Assembly (NCBI GenBank): GCA_038496445.1 | Contig: JALMLS010000421.1 | Coordinates: 1 to 64,000 of the forward strand | Length of the DNA: 64,000 bases | DNA from: Trichosphaerium sp. ATCC 40318 | Lineage: Eukaryota; Protista; Tubulinea | Reading direction: 5' to 3' | Shown here: positions 2,314-58,728 of the stretch, one piece after another | How positions within the stretch are numbered: the stretch's first letter is position 1 | How the letters are laid out: each line of letters starts with the position of its first letter | Translations under genes and position numbers: made by a program | Notes under the pieces: model-generated | Databases searched by the model: none | What the model saw: the letters and a program-made list of their open reading frames with translations, nothing else | Told to the model about the DNA's origin: nothing

Positions 2314-3025
2314 TCACTGCAACTGTTTATAGTCCTCACACTTTTGGTCATCAACATACATACAGTGTGTAGCTAGTTGTCCATTTCTTCGCCACTCTTT
2401 ACACTCACCATTCTTTTTATCTTCGATGAATGTACATTGGAAACCAAGTTGACCGTTTTCATACCATTGATTGAAATAGCCATTTAACTTATCATCTATA
2501 CATACACACTGTATACCAAGTTGACCGTTTTCATACCACTGATTGAAATAGCCATTTAACTTATCATCTATACGTATACACTGTATGTAAAGTTGTCCAT
2601 TCTTGTACCACTGTTTGTACTCAACAATGTGTGTGAAGTTGTCCGTTCTCATGCCATTCCTTGTACTCACCACTTTTCTTGTCATTAACATAAGTAGTAT
2701 GTACATAAAGTTGTCCTTTCTTTGTCCACTGCTTATACTCTCCATTCTTTTTATCTTCGAAATACATACATTGTATCCAAAGTTGATTATTATCATGCCA
2801 GTGCTTGTAAGTACCGCTTTTTTTACCATTAACCATATTATATTTGGCCTCTATTCTACCATTTGGAAACCATTCTACCCAAACACCATTTTTCTCAAGT
2901 TTGGTATTGTAATGTGTATTAATTGCAGCCGTTTTTGAAAGGCTAAGGAACTTATTGAATACTTCCGAGGTAAATGTACATAAATAACGTTGAATATCAC
3001 CTGGAAGCTCAATAATAGTGCACAT
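2314..3025 (-). pseudogene. Intronless F-box-like + MORN-variant (YwqK-like) repeat protein, frameshifted near 2620
   Basis: N-terminal IIELPGDIQRYL followed by 24-aa repeats (KNGEYKQWYENGQL-type). ORFs 2621-3025 and 2314-2829 join out of frame where part of one repeat is missing. Confidence 0.75.
2444..2587. repeat. Near-identical 72-bp tandem duplication within the MORN gene
   Basis: ccaagttgaccgttttcatacca(t/c)tgattgaaatagccatttaacttatcatctatac starts at both 2444 and 2516. Confidence 0.9.
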
Positions 3026-3202
3026 CTGGGTAGTATTGATGAGTTATGTAGTTTTACTGGTAGAGAATGAGATTCTTGTGCAGGGATCTCCAAAAATCCA
3101 CAAAAAATTCTGAAAAATTATTTTGATTTTTCGCGATTGTGAAATTAAGTTTAATAAAGTTAACTTACCGCCAAAATTCTCTCATTGGTCCAACTCAGCC
3201 AC

Positions 3203-4027
3203 ATGTCACGTTGGGCAAGAGAAAAGCCCGGTTTATCATGCCAGTGTTTGTTAAAAAACCTTCCAATGTATCTGCAACTTGTTGCACCAGATACTATCCG
3301 ACACAACATTGTAAAGATTGGTACTCAACCTTTGATGCGTTGTGGAAGGTACTTCAAACAAACCAAAGCGTTGGGAGGGCCTGACTTTAGAAACTTATCA
3401 TACAATGGTTTGGGTGCATTAAAGTATTACCATTGCATCAAACCTCTTAACACTTGTGTAAAAATCGTCAATGAAAAAGGAAAATGCTCAAGTTGTCCAA
3501 AAAACTCGAAATGCACTGTAGAACGACACATCTATGTTACTTCAGACAATCCAGAGTTAGCTCACATCAATTCCTATGGAACTCACGCACCAGAGTTTTC
3601 CGCGCGTAAAACTGTGGATAAAAAGTTCTTTTATTTTCAGGTACTTTATTTTATACAACATGCTACAAGAGTTAATGTTAACAATGCCTAGATACGCAAA
3701 CATGCTAAAGAACTGGATGCTTTCAAAGATAATTATTATGGAGCTATCAAACCAATGTATATACATCGTGTCATGGTACCAAAGCTTATAACTAAACTAA
3801 AAGTACCAACAACATGGAATCCTGACCTATGTGTTATCACTAAATGGATGCATGCATGGCGAACTAGAGCACGATCTGAGTACAAGTACAAACTATTTTT
3901 TGTTTGTCGTTTTTGTTTACTTACCTTCATCAACTCATTTCTTTTTAGACTGCCTGACACTGTAGCTGAAGAGATATCAGAAGTGTTGTTGTCTCCAACT
4001 CTACGTCCATATGTAGTGTATCCACAA
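3203..4027 (+). pseudogene. WRKY/GCM1-like zinc-finger ORF (Mutator-like transposase N-terminus?), truncated by the CMC element
   Basis: Reads KYYHC...KCTVERHIYVTSDNPELAHINSYGTH, resembling the WRKY C..C...Y.G.H fold. Two short GT-AG introns; the frame runs directly into the TIR at 4028. Confidence 0.45.
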
Positions 4028-4345
4028 CACCAGTAGTAAAATCAAAATAGGATTTATAAAGGATTCCTTTAATTTTTCCTAAGGATTTTTTTCCGAAAAA
4101 ACTCTTCCTTAGTTCCCTTGGAATTTGTATGGAATTCTTTAAAAATTTACATTGGAATTTTCAAAGGATTTACAAAGCAATTTCGAATGGACTTTTAATG
4201 GAATATCATAGGGATTTACATTGAAATTCTTGAAGGATTTCTTAAGGATTTTTCTTTGGATTTGTACTGGAATTATAAGGAGATTTTCGTAGGAATTCTT
4301 GTGACATTCGTATTGGAATTTTTAAAGGATTTAAATGAAAAATCA
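4028..4345 (+). repeat. Left TIR plus subterminal GGA(A)TTY repeat field
   Basis: ~28-bp TIR followed by many ggattt/ggaattt/ggaattc motifs spaced roughly 10-25 bp apart. Confidence 0.85.
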
Positions 4346-4412
4346 TGGAAAAACTGGTAAATGAACTATTTATTGGTAACTACAATGCTGTTGTGAGTAT
4401 GGTTTTAGTATA

Positions 4413-5475
4413 TTAGCCAACTATAAACTTGTAGTGATCTTTTGCAGTTGATAGTTGATGTACAATATCTTTCATGAAAATACGATTGGTAACGACTAAA
4501 AGCAATCAGCTACTGAATGATTCAAAATGTGGTTACGTACGTAAAGGGTATTTTTGAACTATTTGTTTATGCTCAGTACAGTGTTTGACGTTTTTTAAAA
4601 AACCAAACAATTGTGACTGCAAACCTTCTATTAATACATCATCAGATGCCTTTGTAAGATATGCAATTGGTTCTGTGTCATCTTGAAAGCATTTTTCAAT
4701 ACATTTAAGTACACCAAGGCCAGTGGCTCCAGGTGAAAGGCATTTTTTTAACGTTATACATTTTGGGTTTTTTTTGCAATTCAGAAACGACATGACCAGT
4801 TTTTTAGAATTCTCAAACAGGTGTGTAGGCGCTTAATACTATTAATGTTTGAAACAAGATATTTTTTTACATACCAACAAAAACGAGATCATTTTTGGAC
4901 TTTACAGTTAGCGTCCAATGCCTAATAAAAAGTTAAAATCATGAAATAAACTCAATCGTTACCATTTTTGTGGATAATCTAGCTCCAACCCAATTGCAAA
5001 AGCATCAAAAGCTATCTTTACAGTGTTATCTTTACATAATAGCACTGGAACAGGAGCTATCCATGATGCAGTGCGTTGATTAGATAGACTTTTCTAGCAA
5101 ACTGTATAAGAAAAACAGTTCGAAAAAAAAAAGAAATAAAACGTACTGCTTTGTGTTTGTTAAAATCTTGCGGTTTGATGATTACACCATCATATTTTAA
5201 TGCTATCAGTGCCCAAAGAGCTTTTTGTGTGAACACAAAGTCATCTTTGGCAAACAGCGGCAAAAACTCTCGTATTTGCACTGTCGTATCACCTGACACT
5301 GTGTAAAACTCATCTCGTTTGTCTATAACAATCTAACAATAAATGTAAACGAAATACACAAAGAGCTCATTGTATGTACCTCACTAGCAGTAGTTTTGTT
5401 GTTTGATTGAGCAACATCTGCAGATGTTGCTTGTGAGTCATTTGTTTGCAAGTCGTTCATTTGCGAAGAAAACAT
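4413..5475 (-). CDS. Transposon accessory gene C: degenerate Ulp1/SENP (C48)-like protein
   Basis: Manual splicing gives an open frame with IAPVPVLL...WHWTLTVK...LVFVAP...PGATGLGVLKCIE; stop TAA at 4413-4415, AATAAA just downstream. Start codon uncertain. Confidence 0.55.
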
Positions 5476-5620
5476 GGCTGGGACAGGAGGCAAAACATAA
5501 TTGTTGCCACCTACAAAATGTGCATTGTTGGTTGTTGTTGGCTTTGTTTGTTGCTGAAATACCACCAATGGGTGTTGATAATCAATTGTACTTCTACGAT
5601 CATAATTAAAAAGCTGAAAG

Positions 5621-6615
5621 TTATGGAACACAATTTAGTTCGTACAGAAATGAAAAATCTGCTTCAGAGTACTTCATTTTAAGCTTTGCTATTGTAGAAT
5701 CAAATGGCGTATAAAATCGTTCTTTCGTATTTGGTTTAAAAGCAAGAATATAATTGTAACAGCCACAATAAAACGGTTTTTTGTTTTTGTGTGAAGAGAA
5801 AAAACTGGGCAACATGATTTCTGCCATTGCAACCAGTCTATGCACTAAATATTTGGTGAGAACTACGTTTAAAAGACATAAACAGTGAGTGCCTGTTGTA
5901 ATTTTGTCTTCGTTTTTGGTTTGAAAATGTACGAGAAACTTTGATATGAGTGCTTTAAACCTTTTTAAAACACTTTCTTCTCTGTACTTGTCCAAAGCTT
6001 TGTATATATCGACCAGCGACATTTTTGTTTTGGCTTCGTAGCTGCTGTACACTTTCAAAATTGTACGCTCCATCTCACTGTTGGTTGGAATGCTTTGAAA
6101 CTTGCCAGAAAGCCAAAGGTACTCAATCATTAAAGGTTTTCTCCAAGGCTAAGTAAAAATAAGCGCTCAAAATTTTGTGATAACAACCAACGAAAAGCCA
6201 ATACATTCCAGCTATTACAATAGCATTTGATTCGTAAAAAAAATTAAAAAAGGAGAATTCTAAAGACGCAGCCCATATTTATTGTCGTTTAGCCGCATTA
6301 AACCAGATTTGGTGTTCTATTCATAAAAAGAAGAAAAAAAGGGTAACTTTTGAAGATGCGAACCATATTAATTGTAGTTTGCTTTTGTTTAAGCAGCTTT
6401 GCCATGTCTGCTTGTAATTCGTCCAATTTTTTGTTTTGATCTGTAATAATTCGTAACAGCGTTTGAAAACAACCTATGCAATGATGAATTGTTTGCGTCA
6501 ACATACTGTGCATACCTTGAAAATAGAGAGTTAATTCTTTTATCTCTTCTGTAGAGTTAGATGCTATTGGTATTGCACCAACATCTACACGTTTTCTTTT
6601 ACGTGCAGCCATCAT
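5621..6615 (-). CDS. Transposon accessory gene B: NLS + coiled-coil protein of unknown function
   Basis: MMAARKRKR (NLS-like), heptad-like ITDQNKKLDELQADMAKLLKQ, then exons continuing into ORF 5621-6130. One splice donor (gtcttt) is weak. Confidence 0.6.
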
Positions 6616-6703
6616 TAACAATAATTTACTTTTTGCGTGGCTTAAAAAATAGCTCCATCTACCTTAAAAGATTGGTTCAAAATGAACTGACTTTATTTTA
6701 GAT

Positions 6704-7954
6704 CTACAAAAAATTGTCAAATCGTTCTAATGCTAGAGATTCTGCCATGGAAATCAACACATAAGAGTCCATAGCTATCTTCCATTTACCAAATTTAGGG
6801 TGTACGAACAAACCTTCGAATGCTGTATATGCTACCATGTCATAGTTGTCAATAGTAGGAGTGAGTACATTGGGAAACATCCAAAATTCATCATATGGTA
6901 TTCTTTCTGTAGACCACAAATAAACAAAAGGCCATGTCATGTTGTTTGGCCATACAAATTGAATAGCAGCGACGAAATCGTAACCAGAACAATCGTGGCT
7001 TACTTCTAAAGCAAAGTGAGGAACGATTATCTTGTGCCTTCGTTCGTACTTGTTTTTGTTTTCTTCACATGGTCAATAAGGATGCTATCAAATAATTCCA
7101 ACCAAGGCTTATTTGTTTGTTTGTTATAAGCAACAACACGAACACCATCATTACATTGATAATCAATGTACATTACTGGCAGATGTCTATGTTCCACAAC
7201 AGCAATTACACGTACTTCTAACAATGTCTTTGAGAGAGCATACTTCGTTTTTGATACATACAATGTGTCCATCAAGGTAAACGTATTTTCAACCTCATAA
7301 GAAAGAGCATTAGTCGTAAAGTTAACTTGTATAGTTTCTTCATCGTTGTTTTTTACAGTCGTTCTAATTTCTTTTTCCAAACGACCTTCTGAAGTAAACC
7401 AAAACACATCCCTAAACGAAACAATTATTTACCAGCAGCACACTAGGTAAAGTATGCACTTGTATTGAACAGAATTAACAACTTGGACAACCAAAACTTT
7501 GACACATCTACCTTCATCAAATGTAGCTTGAATTGAACAAGAGCCGTCTTTTTTGTGTTTAATCCATACTCCTTGCTTTAACCATTGGTTGTTGTGTCTT
7601 GTGAACAATGGGGACAAAAACTGATGAACAAGATAATATCCTGTTAAAACCTTTGCTTGATTTACATACTCTCATGAGCAAAGATGCAAATAGTCACGAT
7701 TTTAGAGAAGAAGGTACCTTTTGTATCAGCTTGAAGGTACTTCTGTTTATTGATGCATTGTTTTTATTTAACCATACAATTAGGAGTATATTCCAGGCTG
7801 TACAGGCATTCCTTTCCATACCGATGGTGGAATAGATAGTCATGTAAATGAAACCAATGGCATCAGTTGCTTTGGGTTTACACTTGAAGACTCTGATAAA
7901 TGTAATTTGAAAACAATCACTGTTGAAGGTAAATTGTACTAATTCTTTTATCAT
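6704..7954 (-). CDS. Transposon accessory gene A: unknown protein with degenerate MORN-variant-like repeats
   Basis: ORFs 7694-7954, 7429-7617, 7027-7407 and 6704-6940 join in frame through short GT-AG introns; contains KQGVWIKHKKDGSCSIQATFDEG and WFTSEGRLEKE. Confidence 0.6.
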
Positions 7955-7985
7955 ATATTTAAACTTTCAATTAGGAACCAAGCGA

Positions 7986-9267
7986 ATGCACACTTTATAT
8001 GGCAACAATTTTATTTGGGCACTACATGGCAGCCGTAATGACAATAATGGTGCTGGAGGAGTTAGACATAGATTAGAAATAAGTACATTACAAAACAAAC
8101 GTAGCATTTGGACAATAGTGCTTAGACGCACAACTTCAAAAACAGATAAGGTTAGTATCAAAAAAACTCCAATTGTCCACTCTTTATTTCTTGGTAACTG
8201 TTGCTTATGTTGTAGATTGATGACACAATACTTAAAAAAATGGCATTTATAAACCAATTAAGCAAGACTTTACGAGAATATCCAAAAAAGAAACCACTCA
8301 ACCACAAATTGGAGCTAAATACTTTATCAGTTAGATATCAAGCGAACAAACATTTGCTGTTAAATGTTTTGGAGCTTAACGCAACAAAAGGTTTACCGAA
8401 AGATGGATTGTTTTGCTTGCATGAAGGAGATTTGCTTATGTGTGATTGTCACACACTGTGTGCCTTAGGTTTGTACACCAATCCATATTGGGCTTTACAT
8501 GGAAATAAATCAGTTGGTTTAAAGGTAATTATCAAACCTGGTATACGCGACAATGAGTACGTTTCTTTTTTTATTCATAGTAAGTGTTAAGTTATTTAGA
8601 ATTGTATACAATGATTGGATGTTAATATGTTTAAGTGAAACTGAAACATATTACAACAGACAAGTGGATTACATAAAAAAATCTATTGAACTACAAGCTA
8701 AACATTCTACTGACAGGTTCAAAGGCAAAACATACTCCATTTTACCCTTACAAAGCACAAAAACGAATGTTGACGCTCAATTGAAGTACCAAAATGAATT
8801 TGCACATTGTATGTACCTTCTTTTACACTTTTTTACAATTGATTGCTCATCAATGATTATAGGTTCAAAATCACTCGGCCAAATACAAGAGTGGTATGCA
8901 CATGGCATTGTGTATAAATATCAACAGCGTATTGCCGTTTTTAGAAGAGAGCGACGACAAAAAGTTAAACTGTTGTCTGGACCAAAAGAAAAAGATGGAA
9001 AAAACTCTTTTGCTCTTGTAAATACTGCGTTGTCTTGCACATGCTGTTTCCACAAACCTAACTTTGTTACCACATTCATGGCAACACCTACACAAACACC
9101 TTTAGATTACAATGAAACTAATCCGACATCATTTCAAACTGCAGTCAACGAGACAAAGGTACATGTTGTTCGCTATGCTGTTTCTAACCTTTTCGTTTTA
9201 TTAGACACTTCAAAAGTTTTTGTATGGTACACTTCAAAAGTGTTTAAGCAATTTTACTTACAAATGA
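7986..9267 (+). CDS. Transposon accessory gene D: unknown protein with duplicated LY.N..WALHG motif
   Basis: ORFs 7923-8252, 8240-8590 and 8553-9284 join in frame through short introns; stop TGA at 9265-9267, AATAAA at ~9296. Confidence 0.65.
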
Positions 9268-9334
9268 TAGGTTCGTCAATGTAATTCTGTTAATCAATAA
9301 ATATATTATATTTAATTTTATTCAATTGAATTAA

Positions 9335-12300
9335 ATGTATCTTTGCTCGGCTTGTAATGTGTGGTTACACCGCAGTAATCACGCAAGACATCTAAAAACA
9401 GATATTCACCAAGCTAATGAATTACGACTGAGAATAATCAATCCTACTATAACAACCAATGTTCAAACGCAGGATAATAACAATAACGCATCAAACACTA
9501 TACTGCGTACTCTTTTCGTTAAAAAAACTAATTCTAATTATCTTATAGCAGCTCTTCACGTACAAACGTTAAATACACTGCCCAACACTACGAATACGAT
9601 TAATAATGTTCTTTTGCCTACGAATCCTCAAAACCAATTCGAAACAGCTTTTGCCGAGCCAATCATGCACGATGCCACAGAAACCGAACGAAAAGCTTAT
9701 TGTGAAAATGCAAATACACAAGAACTTGCTATTGTTAGAACACAGCAAATGGAATTTACTACAATGTTGCAAACAAGCATACCTACGATAGAAAAGGCAC
9801 CAGCATCTGATCAGTTTTTGTACTTAGTGCGCAAGCTGCAATTAGAACAACAATTGCCTGACGAAAATGTCAAGCTTTGGTTAAACTTTTTCAAAACTGC
9901 AGAAACAATCATCAACAAACAAAGCGAGTTTTCAACGACAACTACAAACTCCAAATCAACTCTATCATTTTTTAATGACAAATTAAGTGTTGCTAGCAGC
10001 AAAAAAACGTTTCAAAAGGCATGATTTTCTTATTAATCAACTTAAAGCTTACCAAGGCTTAGTACACACCAAAACTAAACATGCAAAACATAAAGATTGA
10101 AACGACAAACAACTCATTTACAGAAGTTCCATTTATTCCTCCTTCTGAATATGTCAGATTGTTAATATATCATTTAAAAGATAGAAACAGCATAAATGAC
10201 AACTCTAAGTACCCACACATGGTCAATAGAGCTGATATAAATGGAGAAATCAACAACATTCAGATATTTGAAGGTCCAGACACATCACAACGATATCATG
10301 ATTTGTATTTAGATGTTGAAAAGACAGAACGAAACATCAGATTAGCAGGTACAATATTGCTTCAATGGCTTACATTCCTAATTTTTAACCTTTATTTGTA
10401 GCATATGTGTGCCATGACGACTTCACATATGACAAAAAAGATAGTTTTGGCCCAATGTACCTAGTTATTTGGAATATGCCGAATAGTGAAGAAATGCAAG
10501 GAAAGATGACATTGTTTGTGTTGCCTACCAACGTAATAATGGCAAGTGCAATGAAGTATGTTGTAAATGATATTTCAATGATGTATGATGGCATTGAACT
10601 TCAGAGTCCACAATTGCAACAAGTACTTTTTTATTACCAGTATAAGTTGCTTTTTTTCTTATTTTTCGCAGACATTTAAAGTGTACTTAAGATTGGAAAA
10701 AATACTAGGAGACATGCCAGGAACATGCAAGGTTGTATGTACGTTACCTTTCACATCATTAAAAACACTTTACTAAGATTATAGCTATAAAAAACCATGG
10801 TTCAAATCTGCCTTGTCGGGTTTGTGACATATCCAAAGCTGATTTAAAAAGCCCTCAAAAACAGTACAAAAAAAGAACAAAAGAACAAGCACTCATGGTT
10901 TATAACGACAACTCTGTTTCTTACAAAAACAAACTGTATTCATTATGTTTTAATGCTTTTGTACGTAGAGGGTTGTGTGCATCTTTACTTATTGTTTTGT
11001 AGTCTCCATTTTTGTTTCTTCGCAACTTTGACATTTTCCAACACTCTCCTTTTTGTCCGTTTCACAATATTTTATTGGGAATTGCAAAACAAATATTGAT
11101 AGGCACTCTTGAAATGCTTCAAGAAAAGTATTCAAAGTCTGTGCAAAAACAAATAAATGATACTATTGATTGGTACAAAAAACAAAAACACATTTCCATC
11201 AACAAGTACATTTCTGCTTTTTTCCAAAAAAAAGTAACTGTTTTGAATTTAGAAGCAAACCTGTGTGGGATAAACAAGGAGATGTGTGTTTGGTTAAACA
11301 TGGTTGGGATGGAGCTGATACTAGATCTTTTTTGCAAATGGCATTGTTTGTTTTCAGGTCATTGTGTTCTAAAAAAGTAATGGAAACATGGTACGTTCAA
11401 CTTTATAGCACTCCAAAAATAAAAAACCCCTAAAATTCTTTAGGTGTGCTTTACTTAGCTACATTGCTCTGATGTCAAGAAGTTTTTTACAAGAATCTAA
11501 ATTACATTTGGTCACTCATGCTGCCACCAGTTTAAGAAAACTGGTGATGACAAACTTACCAAGTAAGTTAACTGATTAGTTTGTTATTAACGCTTCGAAA
11601 GATGTAAATGTCACAACACCTAACTTTCATGTTTTATTGCACCATGAAGATGCTATTCGAATGTTTGGCATGCCAAAACATTACAGGTTTAGTATGATGT
11701 GATTAAAAAGCAATTAACATTTTTGTTAGCACCTACAGCTGTGAATCCAAACATAGAAAAATCAAAAATTGGAAACGAAGCACAAAGGGTTGCAAAAAAA
11801 TAAGGTACTCATTGCTTTTTTAGTACGAATACTTTTATAATGCTGTTAGAGATATAATGGCAAGAGAGTGTGACTCTATTTCTTCCTATTTTGCTGGAAC
11901 TTTTGACAAAACAATGAATGAACTGTCCGACAACAATCCAAAAGACAAAAAAAACCTTTCAAAGTTTGTTTATGTAGCCAAAGCTCTTTTAAACATTCCT
12001 GAAGCTAACTGGACTCTTCGTACCACAATGTGCTTACAATTAAATTGTTGATTGTATTTTTAGATAATAGGAAACTTGTGCGTTTTGAGTTTTTATCTCA
12101 AACATTTAAAACGGCCTTGTACAATGACACAAATGAATGCAATATTGAGAAAACCTTGCAAATTGCAATGTACAACACTGCAAAATGTGTACAAAGAGAA
12201 TTGTCAGTGTGTGTTTCTAAAAATACATGTCTCAAAACGTGGAGGCCTGAAAAATTAGAAACTAGAAGTGATTGCATTTACATTGAAACGACTGCCATAG

Positions 12301-12630
12301 TACAACTATATGCAGGTCAAGAAGTTTATGTTTTTGGCAGGTGAGTTACAAAAAGCTTGCTAATTGTATACTTACATTAAATATTAATAGGTTGTATACT
12401 ATAAAAGATTTTCATAATAGATACGATGAAATTACAGAACTGGTGACGTATGTACATGACAACAAAACTTCTTTCATTAATTGTCAAGTAGAATTGTTCA
12501 CAATGAGGATGATCCATGTGCTTGTGTTCCCTTGTCTATGATATATAGATCTGAATGTATAATTCCCCATCCTGATGCTGAAACAAACATTTACTTGGTG
12601 AATTATTACCAACGAACCATTCCTAAGTAA
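9335..12630 (+). CDS. CMC/EnSpm-like DDE transposase, multi-exon, apparently intact
   Basis: N-terminal C-x2-C-x11-H-x5-H finger; HDDF...SFGPMYLVIWNMP (first D); GDMPG...KNHG...CRVC (second D); PFHNILLG; PNFHVLLH...IRMFG.P...STYSCESKH (E). Stop TAA at 12628-12630, AATAAA at ~12666. Confidence 0.88.
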
Positions 12631-12697
12631 ATCATACTGATAAGTAGCTCAAATGCGTGATAGTTAATAAAACTGCCGTACAATTTTTGACAATACA

Positions 12698-12871
12698 ATA
12701 AATCCTATGGAATTCCCAATGGTTACGGAATAATGAAGAAATCCCTTTAAATATCCAAATGAAAATGAAATGTGACGAAGGATTTTTGCCACAATTCCTT
12801 TAAAATCCCAAAAAAATACGGAATTTTGCAGGATTCCAGTTGAAAATCCTAGTTTTGTTTTACTACTGATG
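12698..12871 (-). repeat. Right subterminal AA(A)TCC repeat field plus right TIR
   Basis: Repeated aaatcc/aattcc/ggattt motifs ending in aatcctagttttgttttactactgatg. Confidence 0.85.
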
Positions 12872-12997
12872 TAGTAATGTATGGTTCAAATTAACCTTTC
12901 ACTTGAAATAAATACACAATTATTTCGTCGAAAAATATTTGCCGAAGCCAGCTAAGGGCTTAGGTGGGTTCAGCAAATAATCATTTAATGTCAATAC

Positions 12998-14348
12998 AAC
13001 CCTAGCCCTAACCCTAGCTCAATAGTAGTCAATTGTAAACTTGTAAGGAAAAAAATACACAATGTCAACACAACCCTAATGTAATTTTATGTGTGGTTTT
13101 AATACAATATAGCATAAAATGAAGTTATTGATTGATTCTAATATGAAAATGCCTTTAACATTTTCACACCTACTTGTGATGGCCCTTGGATAAAATAATT
13201 ATCAGTAATGTAACTTGTAAAAAAAAAAAATCTTATGTCAACTCAACCCTAGCCCTAACCCTAGCTCAATAGTAGTCAATTGTAAACTTGTAAGGAAAAA
13301 AATACACAATGTCAACACAACCCTAGCATAATTTTATGTGTATATTTAATGCAACATAGTATAGGATGAAGTGCCATATTAATTCAAGCACAAAAATGTC
13401 TTTGGCATTTCTGCACCTACCCGCGATGGCCCGTACAGGACGATATTCGGCGAATAAAAATCACATAGTCCCTAACCCTAATCACACGAAGATATGTGAT
13501 TAGCTTGCAAAACTGGCCTAAATTAGGAGTATACCATATGGCTACCACCATAAGTAAAGACAGCCAACATATTTCAGGCCAAATCCCAAAAATTCCAAAA
13601 ATCTATTATGGCATGTAGGTAAAAAATTCTTATATTATCTTGCTTCCCATACTCTCATGCATATATCTAAATTGGCCAATATGAATTTGGAAACAAAAAG
13701 TATCTTGGGGTATGGTGGTGAGCAATCCAAAATCAAAAAAATATTGCCAACTTTCACAATTCACCAGTTTTGAATCACATATATGTCACCCACCAAAATA
13801 CACATTTGTACCATGATATACACTAAATATTACGATTGCACACAAAATTAGCACCCTTTTCATAATGCACATGGTCGTGATTACATGCAAAAACGTGTTG
13901 TAAGAAAAGATAAAAGCAACATATGTATTGATAACTTTATATGGTGTGCATGTATGGCAATATCGTTTGTTGCATAATAATTTATGATTAAAATTACATA
14001 CAAGTACATATTTAGGCATTATTGTAATCAAGGCCCCCATACAAACTTCTATTAAATGAAAATCAGCTGGATTTTGGCCATCAAAAGCAAAAAAAGGTCC
14101 CAAAAATGGCTATCTCAGCATATATGCCACCGACATAAATCTAGTTGTTTTTACCAACATCGCAGTGGTGTTTTACATAAGAAAAAGTATTCTATTTTGT
14201 TGAAGGGTATTTTCAAAGGTCAGAATCTGCTAAAACATTTGGCACCTCTGTAGTAGTACCTTAAACCTAATTAAATTCTTAATTTTAATTGGTTTCTAGA
14301 AAAAAACTCCAATCTATGATATTGTTGACTAGGGTTAGGGCTAGGGTT
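12998..14348. repeat. Non-coding repeat bounded by inverted telomere-like 20-mers, with a 247-bp-period tandem duplication
   Basis: AACCCTAGCCCTAACCCTAG at 12998 and 13245; exact reverse complement at 14329-14348. Confidence 0.75.
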
Positions 14349-14845
14349 CCAACCCTATCATGTATTAGGGTTAGGTTATTACAAGTTAGAGATTAGAGAT
14401 CTAGCCTTTATCTCACCTACTTAGTGCTTTAAATGTTTTACTTTGCAAACATACATTACTTGCAATAAGGGTTTAGGATTAGTAAAGTAATAAATTAAAT
14501 GGTTTGTGTACTTGTTGACATTTTAATAGCACTTTAAACATTGGGTTAAGGCTAATTTTAAAACAAAATATGAATAATTTTATTACACAATCATCAATTG
14601 GTATTAACAAACAACAAATAGTAAGATGAAATGTGCCAACATTTAAGTTAAATAACTTTGTCAATTGTGAATCAAATTTTATATAAAGTTTAAATTTACA
14701 GCCCTTACATAAATGCAAACATCGTAACCATACAATTTTACTTTATTGAATATCAATGCATTTGTACATACTGAACGATTGTAACTGCAAAAACAACCTT
14801 GTCAATACAAACAAGTTAACCGAGTGATTCAGGATCACGCATGTT

Positions 14846-35098: not shown

Positions 35099-36107
35099 AT
35101 GGCAGCAAAGCGACACAAGACGATTCATGTTTCTTCGCTCGCGTTACTTCCACCTGAAACCTTAACGCAAATTTTAGGCCAGTTAAACAGAAAACAGCGC
35201 ATAATAGCGTCTGCAGTCTCTCGTGTGTTTAACAACGTCATTCATAGCAATATTGGCTTAGACTACCTCATTGTTTCAAGATCATCACACTGTCGTTTCC
35301 TCAAAGGCAGCCCATTGCTCAAAAACACCACAATTGATTGTTCAAGGTCCAAACTTTCAGACAGCGACATGGCTTGCCTTTATGGCGTTCGTACCATAGA
35401 TTTCTACCAATCAGCTATTTCAGATTCAGGTATGTATCCTCAACTCTGATACACCCAGCTAAGCACTGTCAGGTATCCTTGCCTTACTTAGAGGATGGAA
35501 AGACAGTACTCACGATAATACCTTGGGAATTACAAATACAATCAACGTTTCTTCAGATTTAGGTTGTCTTTCTTGTGTTCACACTATAGATCTATCATAT
35601 ACACGTATTACAGATGCAAGTATACTAGCACTAGTAAAAGCAGGAGAGCGTACTATATACAAGATAAAGTTGGGTGGTACCAATATAACAGATGTTTCAT
35701 TAAAAGCTCTGAGAGGTGTTAAAAAGATTGATGTTGGTTTTTGTTATGGAATAACTATTGAAGGAATAAAGGCACTAACAAATGTACACAAAATTACACT
35801 TACTCCAGACGACAAATGGTTAAAACTAATTTGTAATGTTCACACAGTTAAGATTCATAGTGTGGCAGTGACAAACAATGGGATCAAAGATTTGATAAAT
35901 GTAAAGTGCTTGAGCTTGTGGAATAGTGATGTAACAGACTTTGGGTTGAGAAATATGGAGAAGTTAGAACATCTTAAGATTGTTGGTCGTAGTCCACTTA
36001 CAAATGATTGTTTGAAGTATTTAATATCTCTTAAAACTATTAAGCTTGGTCACAGAAGCCTAATTACAAGGAAAGCTGTTGAGGCATTGGGTATCACTTG
36101 TCTGTAA
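35099..36107 (+). CDS. F-box/leucine-rich repeat protein
   Basis: LLPPETLTQILGQL F-box, followed by repeats such as VHTIDLSYTRITD; one intron at ~35430-35472. Confidence 0.85.
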
Positions 36108-37406: not shown

Positions 37407-37628
37407 TGACCTGCAATAACGCTATTTCGATTTAACACTAAGCTACTTTTCAAAAAGTGACTCCCGTTCAGCAACCAGCACGTGACTTTCTGAACCTACC
37501 ATCACACGAAGTACTTCCATAAGGTACACCAATAGGCTAGTTTGCGTACTGTAGTGGAGTTGCCTGTACTCACAAACCATCTCAAAAAACTAGCTTAGCG
37601 TTGGCAAAAAATAGCGCTATTCCCAAAT
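37407..37628. mobile_element. MITE-like element, copy 1
   Basis: Imperfect TIRs tgacctgcaataacgctattt...ctaagc / gcttagcg...atagcgctatt; alignable along its length to 48489-48698. Confidence 0.75.
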
Positions 37629-48488: not shown

Positions 48489-48698
48489 TGACCTGAAAAG
48501 CGCTAGCTTTAAGCCACTTTTAAAAGGCCACCCCATTTGTAGCATGCACGTGACTTTCTGATCTTATGCTCACGTAAAGTACTCCATAAGGATACACTAA
48601 TGGATAGCTTTAAGAGTTGCACAAGGCCTACCTTATGTTCACAACCATCCCGAAAAATCAGGCTTAGCGCTAACTCAAAATAGCGTTATTTCAGGTCA
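48489..48698. mobile_element. MITE-like element, copy 2
   Basis: tgacctgaaa..cgcta ... tagcgttatttcaggtca TIRs; shares the core gcacgtgactttctga with copy 1. Confidence 0.75.
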
Positions 48699-57675: not shown

Positions 57676-58728
57676 TTAAACCTGAGCATACAAGTTGATT
57701 TTGTGTAAGTCTACAACATCCGTGTCCGGATATTTTTCTGTTACAGCTTTTGTTAAGCAATTAAGACCTAGTACTGATGTAGTGACTATATTTACAAACA
57801 CAGGGCGCTCTTTATAGCACTTTTTAGTAAATGTGTCGAAAGCGTTTATCATTGCAGTTGCCCCCACGTCTTTTGGTGTACCTAAATGACCGCAAAACAA
57901 TAAAGGCATTGATATTGATCTTATAGCCTGTTCTTTAGCATGTTCTAGCACTTTTCTAAACGGAAAAAAATTAAAACTTTTTTTTTTCACCTCTAAAAGC
58001 ACGTGCAAGTAAGTTGATTCTACCTCCACCAATGCCCTTTCTAAATAATGTGTCAGTAATAAGTCTCGCCTGGGAAATACTAGTATACCTCTATCTCCTT
58101 GATAATATGTGCCAAGCACGTGTGTTACATATCGCCAAGATTCCCCACCACTTGATGCTACAAGTTTTTTGTTAGTGTTGAGTTGCTTTTGCATTGTTGT
58201 ATTTACTGAACATGTAACCAGGTCTTATATCTCCTATTTGTAGAAACTGACAAGTTAGTATGATGGTGCGTTTTATTGATGTACTTTTGTGAGGTCCGTT
58301 ACTTCCCTAACTGATAAAAGTTAACAACAACTTTTCAAATCAAAGTTAAACGTCAGTGTTTTACCTGTGCCGTTTCCTGCTTTGTCCATAATATCACACG
58401 CATGACCTGTCCTCCATTGAACCAAAGAGGCTGTGTTCATTGTAAGTGTCAAAACAATTTTATATCAAACTTACGGTGTGCACTAAGAACTACACAGTCG
58501 CTAGGTTCATTTGCGATGTTTCCAAACCTAACTGACAGAGTGTGACCTGAATAAACGGTAAGTCTTACCAAACCTATTTAATCTATATTACCTGATTTAA
58601 ATGAGCGCCTTATGACCTCCTGTATTCTACATTGATACGTTGTGTCTTAATAGGCGTAAATGTTCGCTACCACATAGCTCATACGCACGGAAACCACGTT
58701 TTATAACTCTATGATTACCTAGATCCAT
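57676..58728 (-). CDS. Macrodomain-like protein
   Basis: LSVRFGNIANEPSDCVV, YVTHVLG, IRSISMPLLFCGHLGTPKDVGATAMI. Start approximate. Confidence 0.7.

Follow-up and report, generated by a model that had tools for sequence, protein, structure and literature searches.

What kind of mobile element lies at positions 4028-12871 of a 64-kb stretch of the genome of the amoeba Trichosphaerium sp. ATCC 40318 (GenBank assembly GCA_038496445.1, contig JALMLS010000421.1; the whole stretch is hereafter the window, and all coordinates are positions in it), and what might the genes that accompany its transposase be doing there? On balance, we favor the view that this unit of about 8.8 kb is a DNA transposon that moves autonomously by cut-and-paste and belongs to the CMCT (EnSpm/CACTA-Mirage-Chapaev-Transib) clade; it would be Plavaka-like by its termini and carry about three accessory genes of long residence. 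The element is real and apparently intact, and it apparently constitutes a divergent, hitherto undescribed Plavaka-like family.

Transposase and termini

The transposase gene (9335-12630, plus strand) comprises 14 exons; once its 13 introns, each 39-53 nt long, are spliced out, the exons encode 898 residues uninterrupted by a stop. Its 684-nt first exon, which opens with an N-terminal C2H2-like finger, precedes a GC-AG intron (10019-10062). By inspection of the motif context, we assigned the catalytic triad to D329 (position 10416), D411 (10711) and E665 (11743). Between the latter two are located C430-RV-C433 and H641-VLL-H645, as well as C496-x2-H; the CMCT clade is defined by such C(2)C and H(3-4)H motifs that lie after the second D and ahead of the E (PMC12730594). 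Alongside the DDE triad and these motifs, the element displays CA..TG termini with terminal inverted repeats (TIRs). A preliminary description of this locus had recognized a multi-gene element of the CMC/CACTA group with an apparently intact, spliced DDE transposase. Both claims are borne out: the open reading frame (ORF) runs uninterrupted across its 13 introns with the catalytic triad and the zinc-binding C(2)C and H(3)H motifs in place, and the transposase motifs and the termini together back the assignment to the group.

Library searches, here and for the other genes, used single exons, and the joined spliced models were compared with local profiles by means of hidden Markov models (HMMs), hhalign and position-specific scoring matrices (PSSMs). 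No single transposase exon was matched in Pfam, and no related transposase was retrieved by a word-index homologue search with one exon, by a search of viral and metagenome contigs, or with a CACTA DNA pattern; hence, the transposase appears to represent a divergent lineage.

The left terminus (4028-4055, plus strand) begins CACCAGTAGTAAAA, and the right one (12844-12871) reads CATCAGTAGTAAAA on the minus strand, in a PlavakaB-like arrangement of the CATCA..TGATG type. Their core is a 25-bp pair (4031-4055 and 12844-12868) identical at 22 of 25 positions; its two matches form the sole such pair in the window, with none in 100 shuffles, and it can be extended outward to CACCAG at 4028 and CTGATG at 12871. 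Two boundaries come into consideration, namely 4028-12871, with CACCA..TGATG ends and the 2-bp flanks AA/TA, and 4031-12868, with CAG..CTG ends and the flanks AC/AT. The termini are CA..TG under either option, and each pair of flanks has one mismatch, to be set beside the target-site duplication (TSD) of 2-5 bp that characterizes the CMCT clade; a perfect duplication is absent at both candidate boundaries. PlavakaB elements follow a rule of CATCA..TGATG termini with a 2-3-bp TSD (PMC12730594), and eight bases are shared between the PlavakaB-2_SLL end, CATCAGTAAA, and the present right end, whose minus strand reads CATCAGTA. This right end fits the published terminus rule, and we slightly favor 4028-12871. 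A 3-bp TSD is ruled out, as the flanks CAA and TAG differ, and an assignment to EnSpm/CACTA sensu stricto was rejected on these same flanks and on a right end of the form ..ATG rather than GTG.

Inside the termini lie arrays of GGAWTT motifs, on the left at 4050-4345 (plus strand), with a period of 11-12 or 23 bp, and on the right at 12700-12844 (minus strand). In the 315 and 179 bases adjoining the ends the motif attains a density of 44-50 per kb, versus 0.5 per kb inside the element, a difference of about 90-fold. By analogy with the family, these arrays are likely candidates for transposase-binding sites. The matching termini and subterminal repeats of the preliminary description accordingly stand, now with a measured TIR and motif density.

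The element interrupts a spliced orphan gene on the plus strand (3185-4027), which resumes at about 12872-12912, its last codons, stop and AATAAA lying just to the right of the insertion. The product is a Cys/His-rich protein of about 250 residues, encoded with introns of 51 and 63 nt and lacking any match in Pfam or PHROGs, and the insertion cost it only its last few codons. When the element and one 2-bp copy are excised in silico at the CAG..CTG boundary, the ORF runs on to ...VVMYGSN and a stop, with AATAAA ten bases later; if a TA duplication at the CATCA boundary is assumed instead, the sequence as read by eye keeps the frame and yields a product two codons shorter. The 2-bp TSD is imperfect and mildly supported, because such removal restores the in-frame end, stop and AATAAA of the target gene.

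The accessory gene set

How many genes accompany the transposase? A gene finder trained solely on the codons and splice sites of the transposase, with locally shuffled DNA and the opposite strand as controls, gave a best model with three accessory genes: gene A (7608-9267, plus strand), gene B (6704-7675, minus strand) and gene CD (4413-6615, minus strand). From the ATGs at 7608, 7675 and 6615 they score 75, 52 and 102, respectively, against local-shuffle maxima of 10-12 and opposite-strand scores of 2-8. The genes are packed with intergenic gaps of 67-88 nt, and gene spans cover 91% of the element, in agreement with the near-spacerless organization noted earlier. Whether the exons splice into intact ORFs, a question raised by the preliminary description, is answered in the affirmative by the best gene models, for the transposase and accessory genes alike.

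The same description had counted four accessory genes, three of them on the minus strand, a count which the best model revises to three and two. The pieces 6615-6260, 6206-5621 and 5475-4413 join into a 581-residue ORF via ten introns of 41-53 nt. An AATAAA is found within 45 nt of the stops of gene A, the transposase, B and CD (the last at 4413), and none within 110 nt of the alternative stops at 6260 or 5621 (chance about 0.07 each); moreover, the linker at 5479-5592 scores as coding. Because the joining introns are of normal length and AATAAA follows only the stop at 4413, we read these pieces as one gene. With fair confidence, two minus-strand genes is the best estimate, within a formal range of one to four, so that the element probably holds four genes and not five.

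A five-gene structure with three separate minus-strand genes, one of them a stand-alone Ulp1-like pseudo-protease (4413-5475), and with CAG..CTG ends at 4031-12868, appears unlikely. It draws on in-frame start codons (6206 and 5475) and stops (6260 and 5621), on the tendency of the gene finder to over-join, fusing even B with CD, and on the need for only one change in the AC/AT flanks of that boundary. Opposed to it, beyond the AATAAA placement, the normal joining introns and the coding-like linker, are the agreement of the CATCAGTA end with PlavakaB and the behavior of the supposed protease: a profile of 12 Ulp1-like sequences, tried on the hint of an HW motif, scores CD below its shuffle mean. 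The H-D-C triad with QxxxxDCG of Ulp1/C48 was not found in CD, where the HW motif occurs alone.

Under the preferred two-gene model of the minus strand, CD (11 exons in the best model, with the possibility of its being two or three genes) has a basic N-terminal RKRKR patch resembling a nuclear localization signal, a helical domain, a Q/N/T-rich linker and a C-terminal domain with the lone HW motif; it likely contains a coiled coil. Gene B, best modeled with four exons and 276 residues, is probably beta-rich, and the placement of its start codon at 7675 is uncertain. This best ATG makes B overlap gene A head to head by 68 nt (7608-7675), with most of the first exon of A inside the first intron of B (7669-7621). 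An earlier model of B with an exon at 7718-7954 was discarded for its negative codon score and an acceptor in the 9th percentile, as was a MORN repeat in B, its MORN-like stretch being equaled in 103 of 500 shuffles. Some stretches have a GNAT-like or TET-like look to the eye, which no search supported. To judge from these searches, B and CD are orphans, and they probably act as non-catalytic helpers.

The wider searches were likewise negative: Rfam, exact protein look-up and the ESM Atlas gave no match, the word-index searches with gene A exons yielded no homologue, the largest CD exon drew 0 matches in a full HMMER search, and the viral and metagenome contigs held no related loci. Single-sequence folds attained pLDDT (predicted local distance difference test) values of 45 and 40 and yielded structure matches devoid of meaning.

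Are these genes, then, dedicated to the element or captured from the host? The first-pass accessory introns measure 41-54 nt, with a median of 46.5 nt versus 45 nt for the transposase (p=0.92), and are shorter than those of the host thiolase gene at 1-2190 (12 introns, median 76 nt; p=7e-4, the comparison being with one host gene). With gene A revised, three more introns join the set, two measuring 46-47 nt and the third 65 nt. Because the accessory introns match those of the transposase and not those of the thiolase, and because the ORFs are intact, we suggest that these genes are long-standing residents of the element and not captured host fragments. The earlier inference of a dedicated set is upheld to this extent, the support being indirect.

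Gene A and a possible counter-silencing role

Gene A has seven exons and a product of 452-453 residues. Its start at 7608 lies 630 bp upstream of the start of an obvious ORF at 8240, to which the plus strand of 7608-8150 is spliced by sites in the 82nd-98th percentile. The added part contains EYxPG...HxD, with H55 (7817) and D57 (7823), a second His, H109 (8025), 54 residues on in WALHG, and then an Arg (R122 or R124, at 8064 or 8070); the spacing to the second His is 55-56 residues in the AlkB proteins of E. coli and Rhizobium. This HxD...H...R series follows the order and spacing of AlkB, albeit as a pattern recognized post hoc, and the putative domain is spread over three exons of 43-58 residues. 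We consider it reasonably likely from these motifs that gene A encodes a 2-oxoglutarate (2OG)/Fe(II) dioxygenase domain of the AlkB type.

The second half of gene A resembles its first half (7 of 2000 shuffles) and weakly resembles the N-terminal half of SRA domains, so that a weakly SRA-like or duplicated domain may follow at about 8390-8620. A profile of 126 retrieved SRA domains gave no HMMER match in gene A. In a glocal PSSM comparison the score was reached in 1-4 of 500 shuffles with the intron 8557-8599 and in 43 of 500 with the better-scoring alternative 8541-8580, the first 40 SRA columns giving 9-14 of 500 under both splice choices. The SRA pocket motifs (GVH, AGI, GGYxDD and YTG) are mostly altered, and an SRA domain in gene A is doubtful.

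In favor of the motif, the expression Y.PG.{2,3}[IL]..H.D fits 84 of 125 retrieved AlkB proteins, and the window, translated in all six frames, contains it a single time, at 7787, with 1e-4 matches expected in the element. Several points weigh against our reading of the element and of gene A. This expectation overstates the significance, the expression having been set after the motif was noticed, and the retrieved AlkB proteins are mostly of one subfamily. The final AlkB arginine is lacking in gene A. No significant match to AlkB or PF13532 was obtained with local profiles or with Pfam by exon, and the dioxygenase fold is unsupported by HMM, by hhalign (E 0.57) and by PSSM (74-200 of 500 shuffles). 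No exon of the element has a significant match in Pfam, NCBIfam, PHROGs or the PDB. The transposase is assigned by motifs, with neither a profile score nor a tree; the ends and the TSD have one or two mismatches; and the TIR pattern found no second copy in metagenome contigs. Lastly, the observed/expected CpG ratio is 0.63 in the element versus 0.87 for the remainder of the window, whose 8.8-kb slices span 0.67-1.10, and 0.61 in the host thiolase; because the thiolase is equally low, the depressed ratio of the element is not evidence of transposon-specific methylation.

Nevertheless, we posit the following course of events, modeled on the family. The transposase would bind the GGAWTT arrays and pair the ends, excise the 8.8-kb unit and reinsert it elsewhere by cut-and-paste, in the present case close to where another gene ends (3') and leaving an imperfect 2-bp duplication. 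The unit would carry with it about three long-resident accessory genes. Of these, gene A, which immediately precedes the transposase gene, would be a 2OG/Fe(II) dioxygenase whose action on a methylated base, by oxidation or removal, in the DNA or RNA of the element itself counters host silencing. As the same has been proposed for TET/JBP in fungal Plavaka elements and for PAG3 in their red-algal counterparts, we advance precisely this anti-silencing role as a tentative possibility. The tentative anti-silencing idea of the preliminary description gains from the AlkB-like motifs, which it had not named.

Gene A might conversely be a dioxygenase with another target, such as alkylation damage in need of repair, the element transcripts as substrates of RNA modification, or a glycosylated or otherwise unusual base, an alternative that we find rather unlikely. 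AlkB proteins chiefly repair alkylated bases or demethylate RNA, which speaks for it, as does the AlkB-type form of the gene A motif (YxPG..HxD); the match to SRA, a reader of 5-methylcytosine, is also weak and declines under the better-scoring splice. Set against it are the known transposon-borne 2OG oxygenases (TET/JBP and PAG3), which have been read as anti-silencing factors, and the persistence of the match to the first 40 SRA columns under either splice. It is improbable that the extra genes are passive cargo, orphans acquired from the host or from other DNA of mobile or viral origin that contribute nothing to transposition, with dioxygenase motifs that are due to chance or vestigial. For this view, no profile or fold test supports the accessory domains and a single copy was seen; in addition, the neighborhood outside the TIRs includes a MORN-repeat gene and further orphan genes that are low in GC and have short introns, so that short introns are not specific to the element. 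Against it, every ORF is intact and tightly packed, and the HxD-H-R series resembles AlkB in both order and spacing.

A broader proposition, which we regard as quite unlikely at this stage, is that an amoebozoan Plavaka-like lineage routinely carries, beside the transposase, a fusion of a degenerate SRA-like reader with a dioxygenase of the AlkB and not the TET/JBP type, together with further dedicated helpers. If true, this would amount to an eraser of base marks on DNA that is encoded by the element and evolved independently, and it would mean that this amoeba has a defence against transposons based on methylation. Counter-silencing enzymes of transposons are documented in few lineages, namely VANDAL, fungal TET/JBP elements and red-algal Plavaka; were gene A an active AlkB-type enzyme acting on element DNA, the arms race would extend to Amoebozoa with a different enzyme class, for which this compact, apparently intact copy offers a convenient test case. 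If gene A is not such an enzyme, there is still a divergent Plavaka-like family worth curating, of modest general interest.

Known elements and the surrounding window

VANDAL Mutator-like elements carry the VANC anti-silencing factor and a Ulp1-like gene. They share with the present element the concept of accessory genes serving the element, but belong to another transposase superfamily, and here neither support for Ulp1 nor similarity to VANC is seen.

Multi-gene Plavaka/EnSpm elements with 2OG oxygenases are already published, from Bostrychia, Chondrus and TET+ fungal elements. The premise of the preliminary description that CACTA elements carry about one accessory protein is hence outdated: red-algal giant Plavaka elements (Bostrychia and others) have three accessory genes, PAG1-3, including a putative 2OG oxygenase detected at weak significance (10.1101/2025.02.11.637652), and EnSpm families of Chondrus crispus, 16-20 kb in size, have 4-5 ORFs (PMC6431247). 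Like the red-algal elements, the present one combines a transposase with about three accessory genes, one a putative 2OG oxygenase for which self-modification is proposed; compared by description, it differs in its size (8.8 kb versus 17-19 kb) and in that neither PAG2 (adenine methylase and SET) nor ParB domains were seen. With EnSpm/CACTA it shares a CAC-like left end, short TIRs with subterminal repeats, a DDE transposase and several ORFs, but it has no 3-bp TSD and no Transposase_21 or TnpA-type match by exon.

A close likeness is to PlavakaB, of which TET/JBP-carrying families occur in Agaricomycetes (Kojima 2025, PMC12730594). It extends to the CATCA..TGATG-type terminus at the right end, exact and with the eight bases of PlavakaB-2_SLL, a mildly supported 2-bp-scale TSD, the size range of 6-9 kb, the C(2)C and H(3-4)H motifs and a 2OG/Fe(II) dioxygenase passenger, probable here and matched in the TET/JBP families. 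The present element departs from these in its CACCA left end, in the AlkB-type rather than TET/JBP motif of its passenger, in its two further orphan genes, in the lack of any exon matching the Pfam Plavaka model and in its amoeba host. Our literature searches turned up neither an AlkB-type passenger nor elements of this kind in amoebae, a weak indication that none exist.

The window as a whole is intron-rich with a GC content of about 38%; the Trichosphaerium draft genome has a GC content of 37.69% and a mean intron of 75.4 bp (PMC10521059). To the left of the interrupted gene, a MORN_2-repeat gene (2314-3025, minus strand; Pfam E 6e-12 and 1e-9) is spread over two frames, has an F-box-like N-terminus by eye and resembles giant-virus-type repeat genes. 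On the right, a low-GC stretch at 12975-14350 contains a direct repeat of 247 bp, along with a 20-bp motif with CCCTAA/CCCTAG that recurs inverted at 14329-14348, and probably represents another, non-autonomous element that adjoins the transposon directly; the observed/expected CpG ratio is 0.37 across 12872-14800. Farther away, a 37-bp inverted repeat (86%) at 37407-37443 and 48662-48698, accompanied by a 56-bp direct repeat (37478/48546), spans 11.2 kb, and these pairs may mark either the two ends of a further element or promoters that are paralogous. A long intron-free leucine-rich repeat ORF (35523-36107, plus strand; Pfam LRR_4) and a Macro-domain ORF (57676-58194, minus strand) are ordinary host or virus-like genes.

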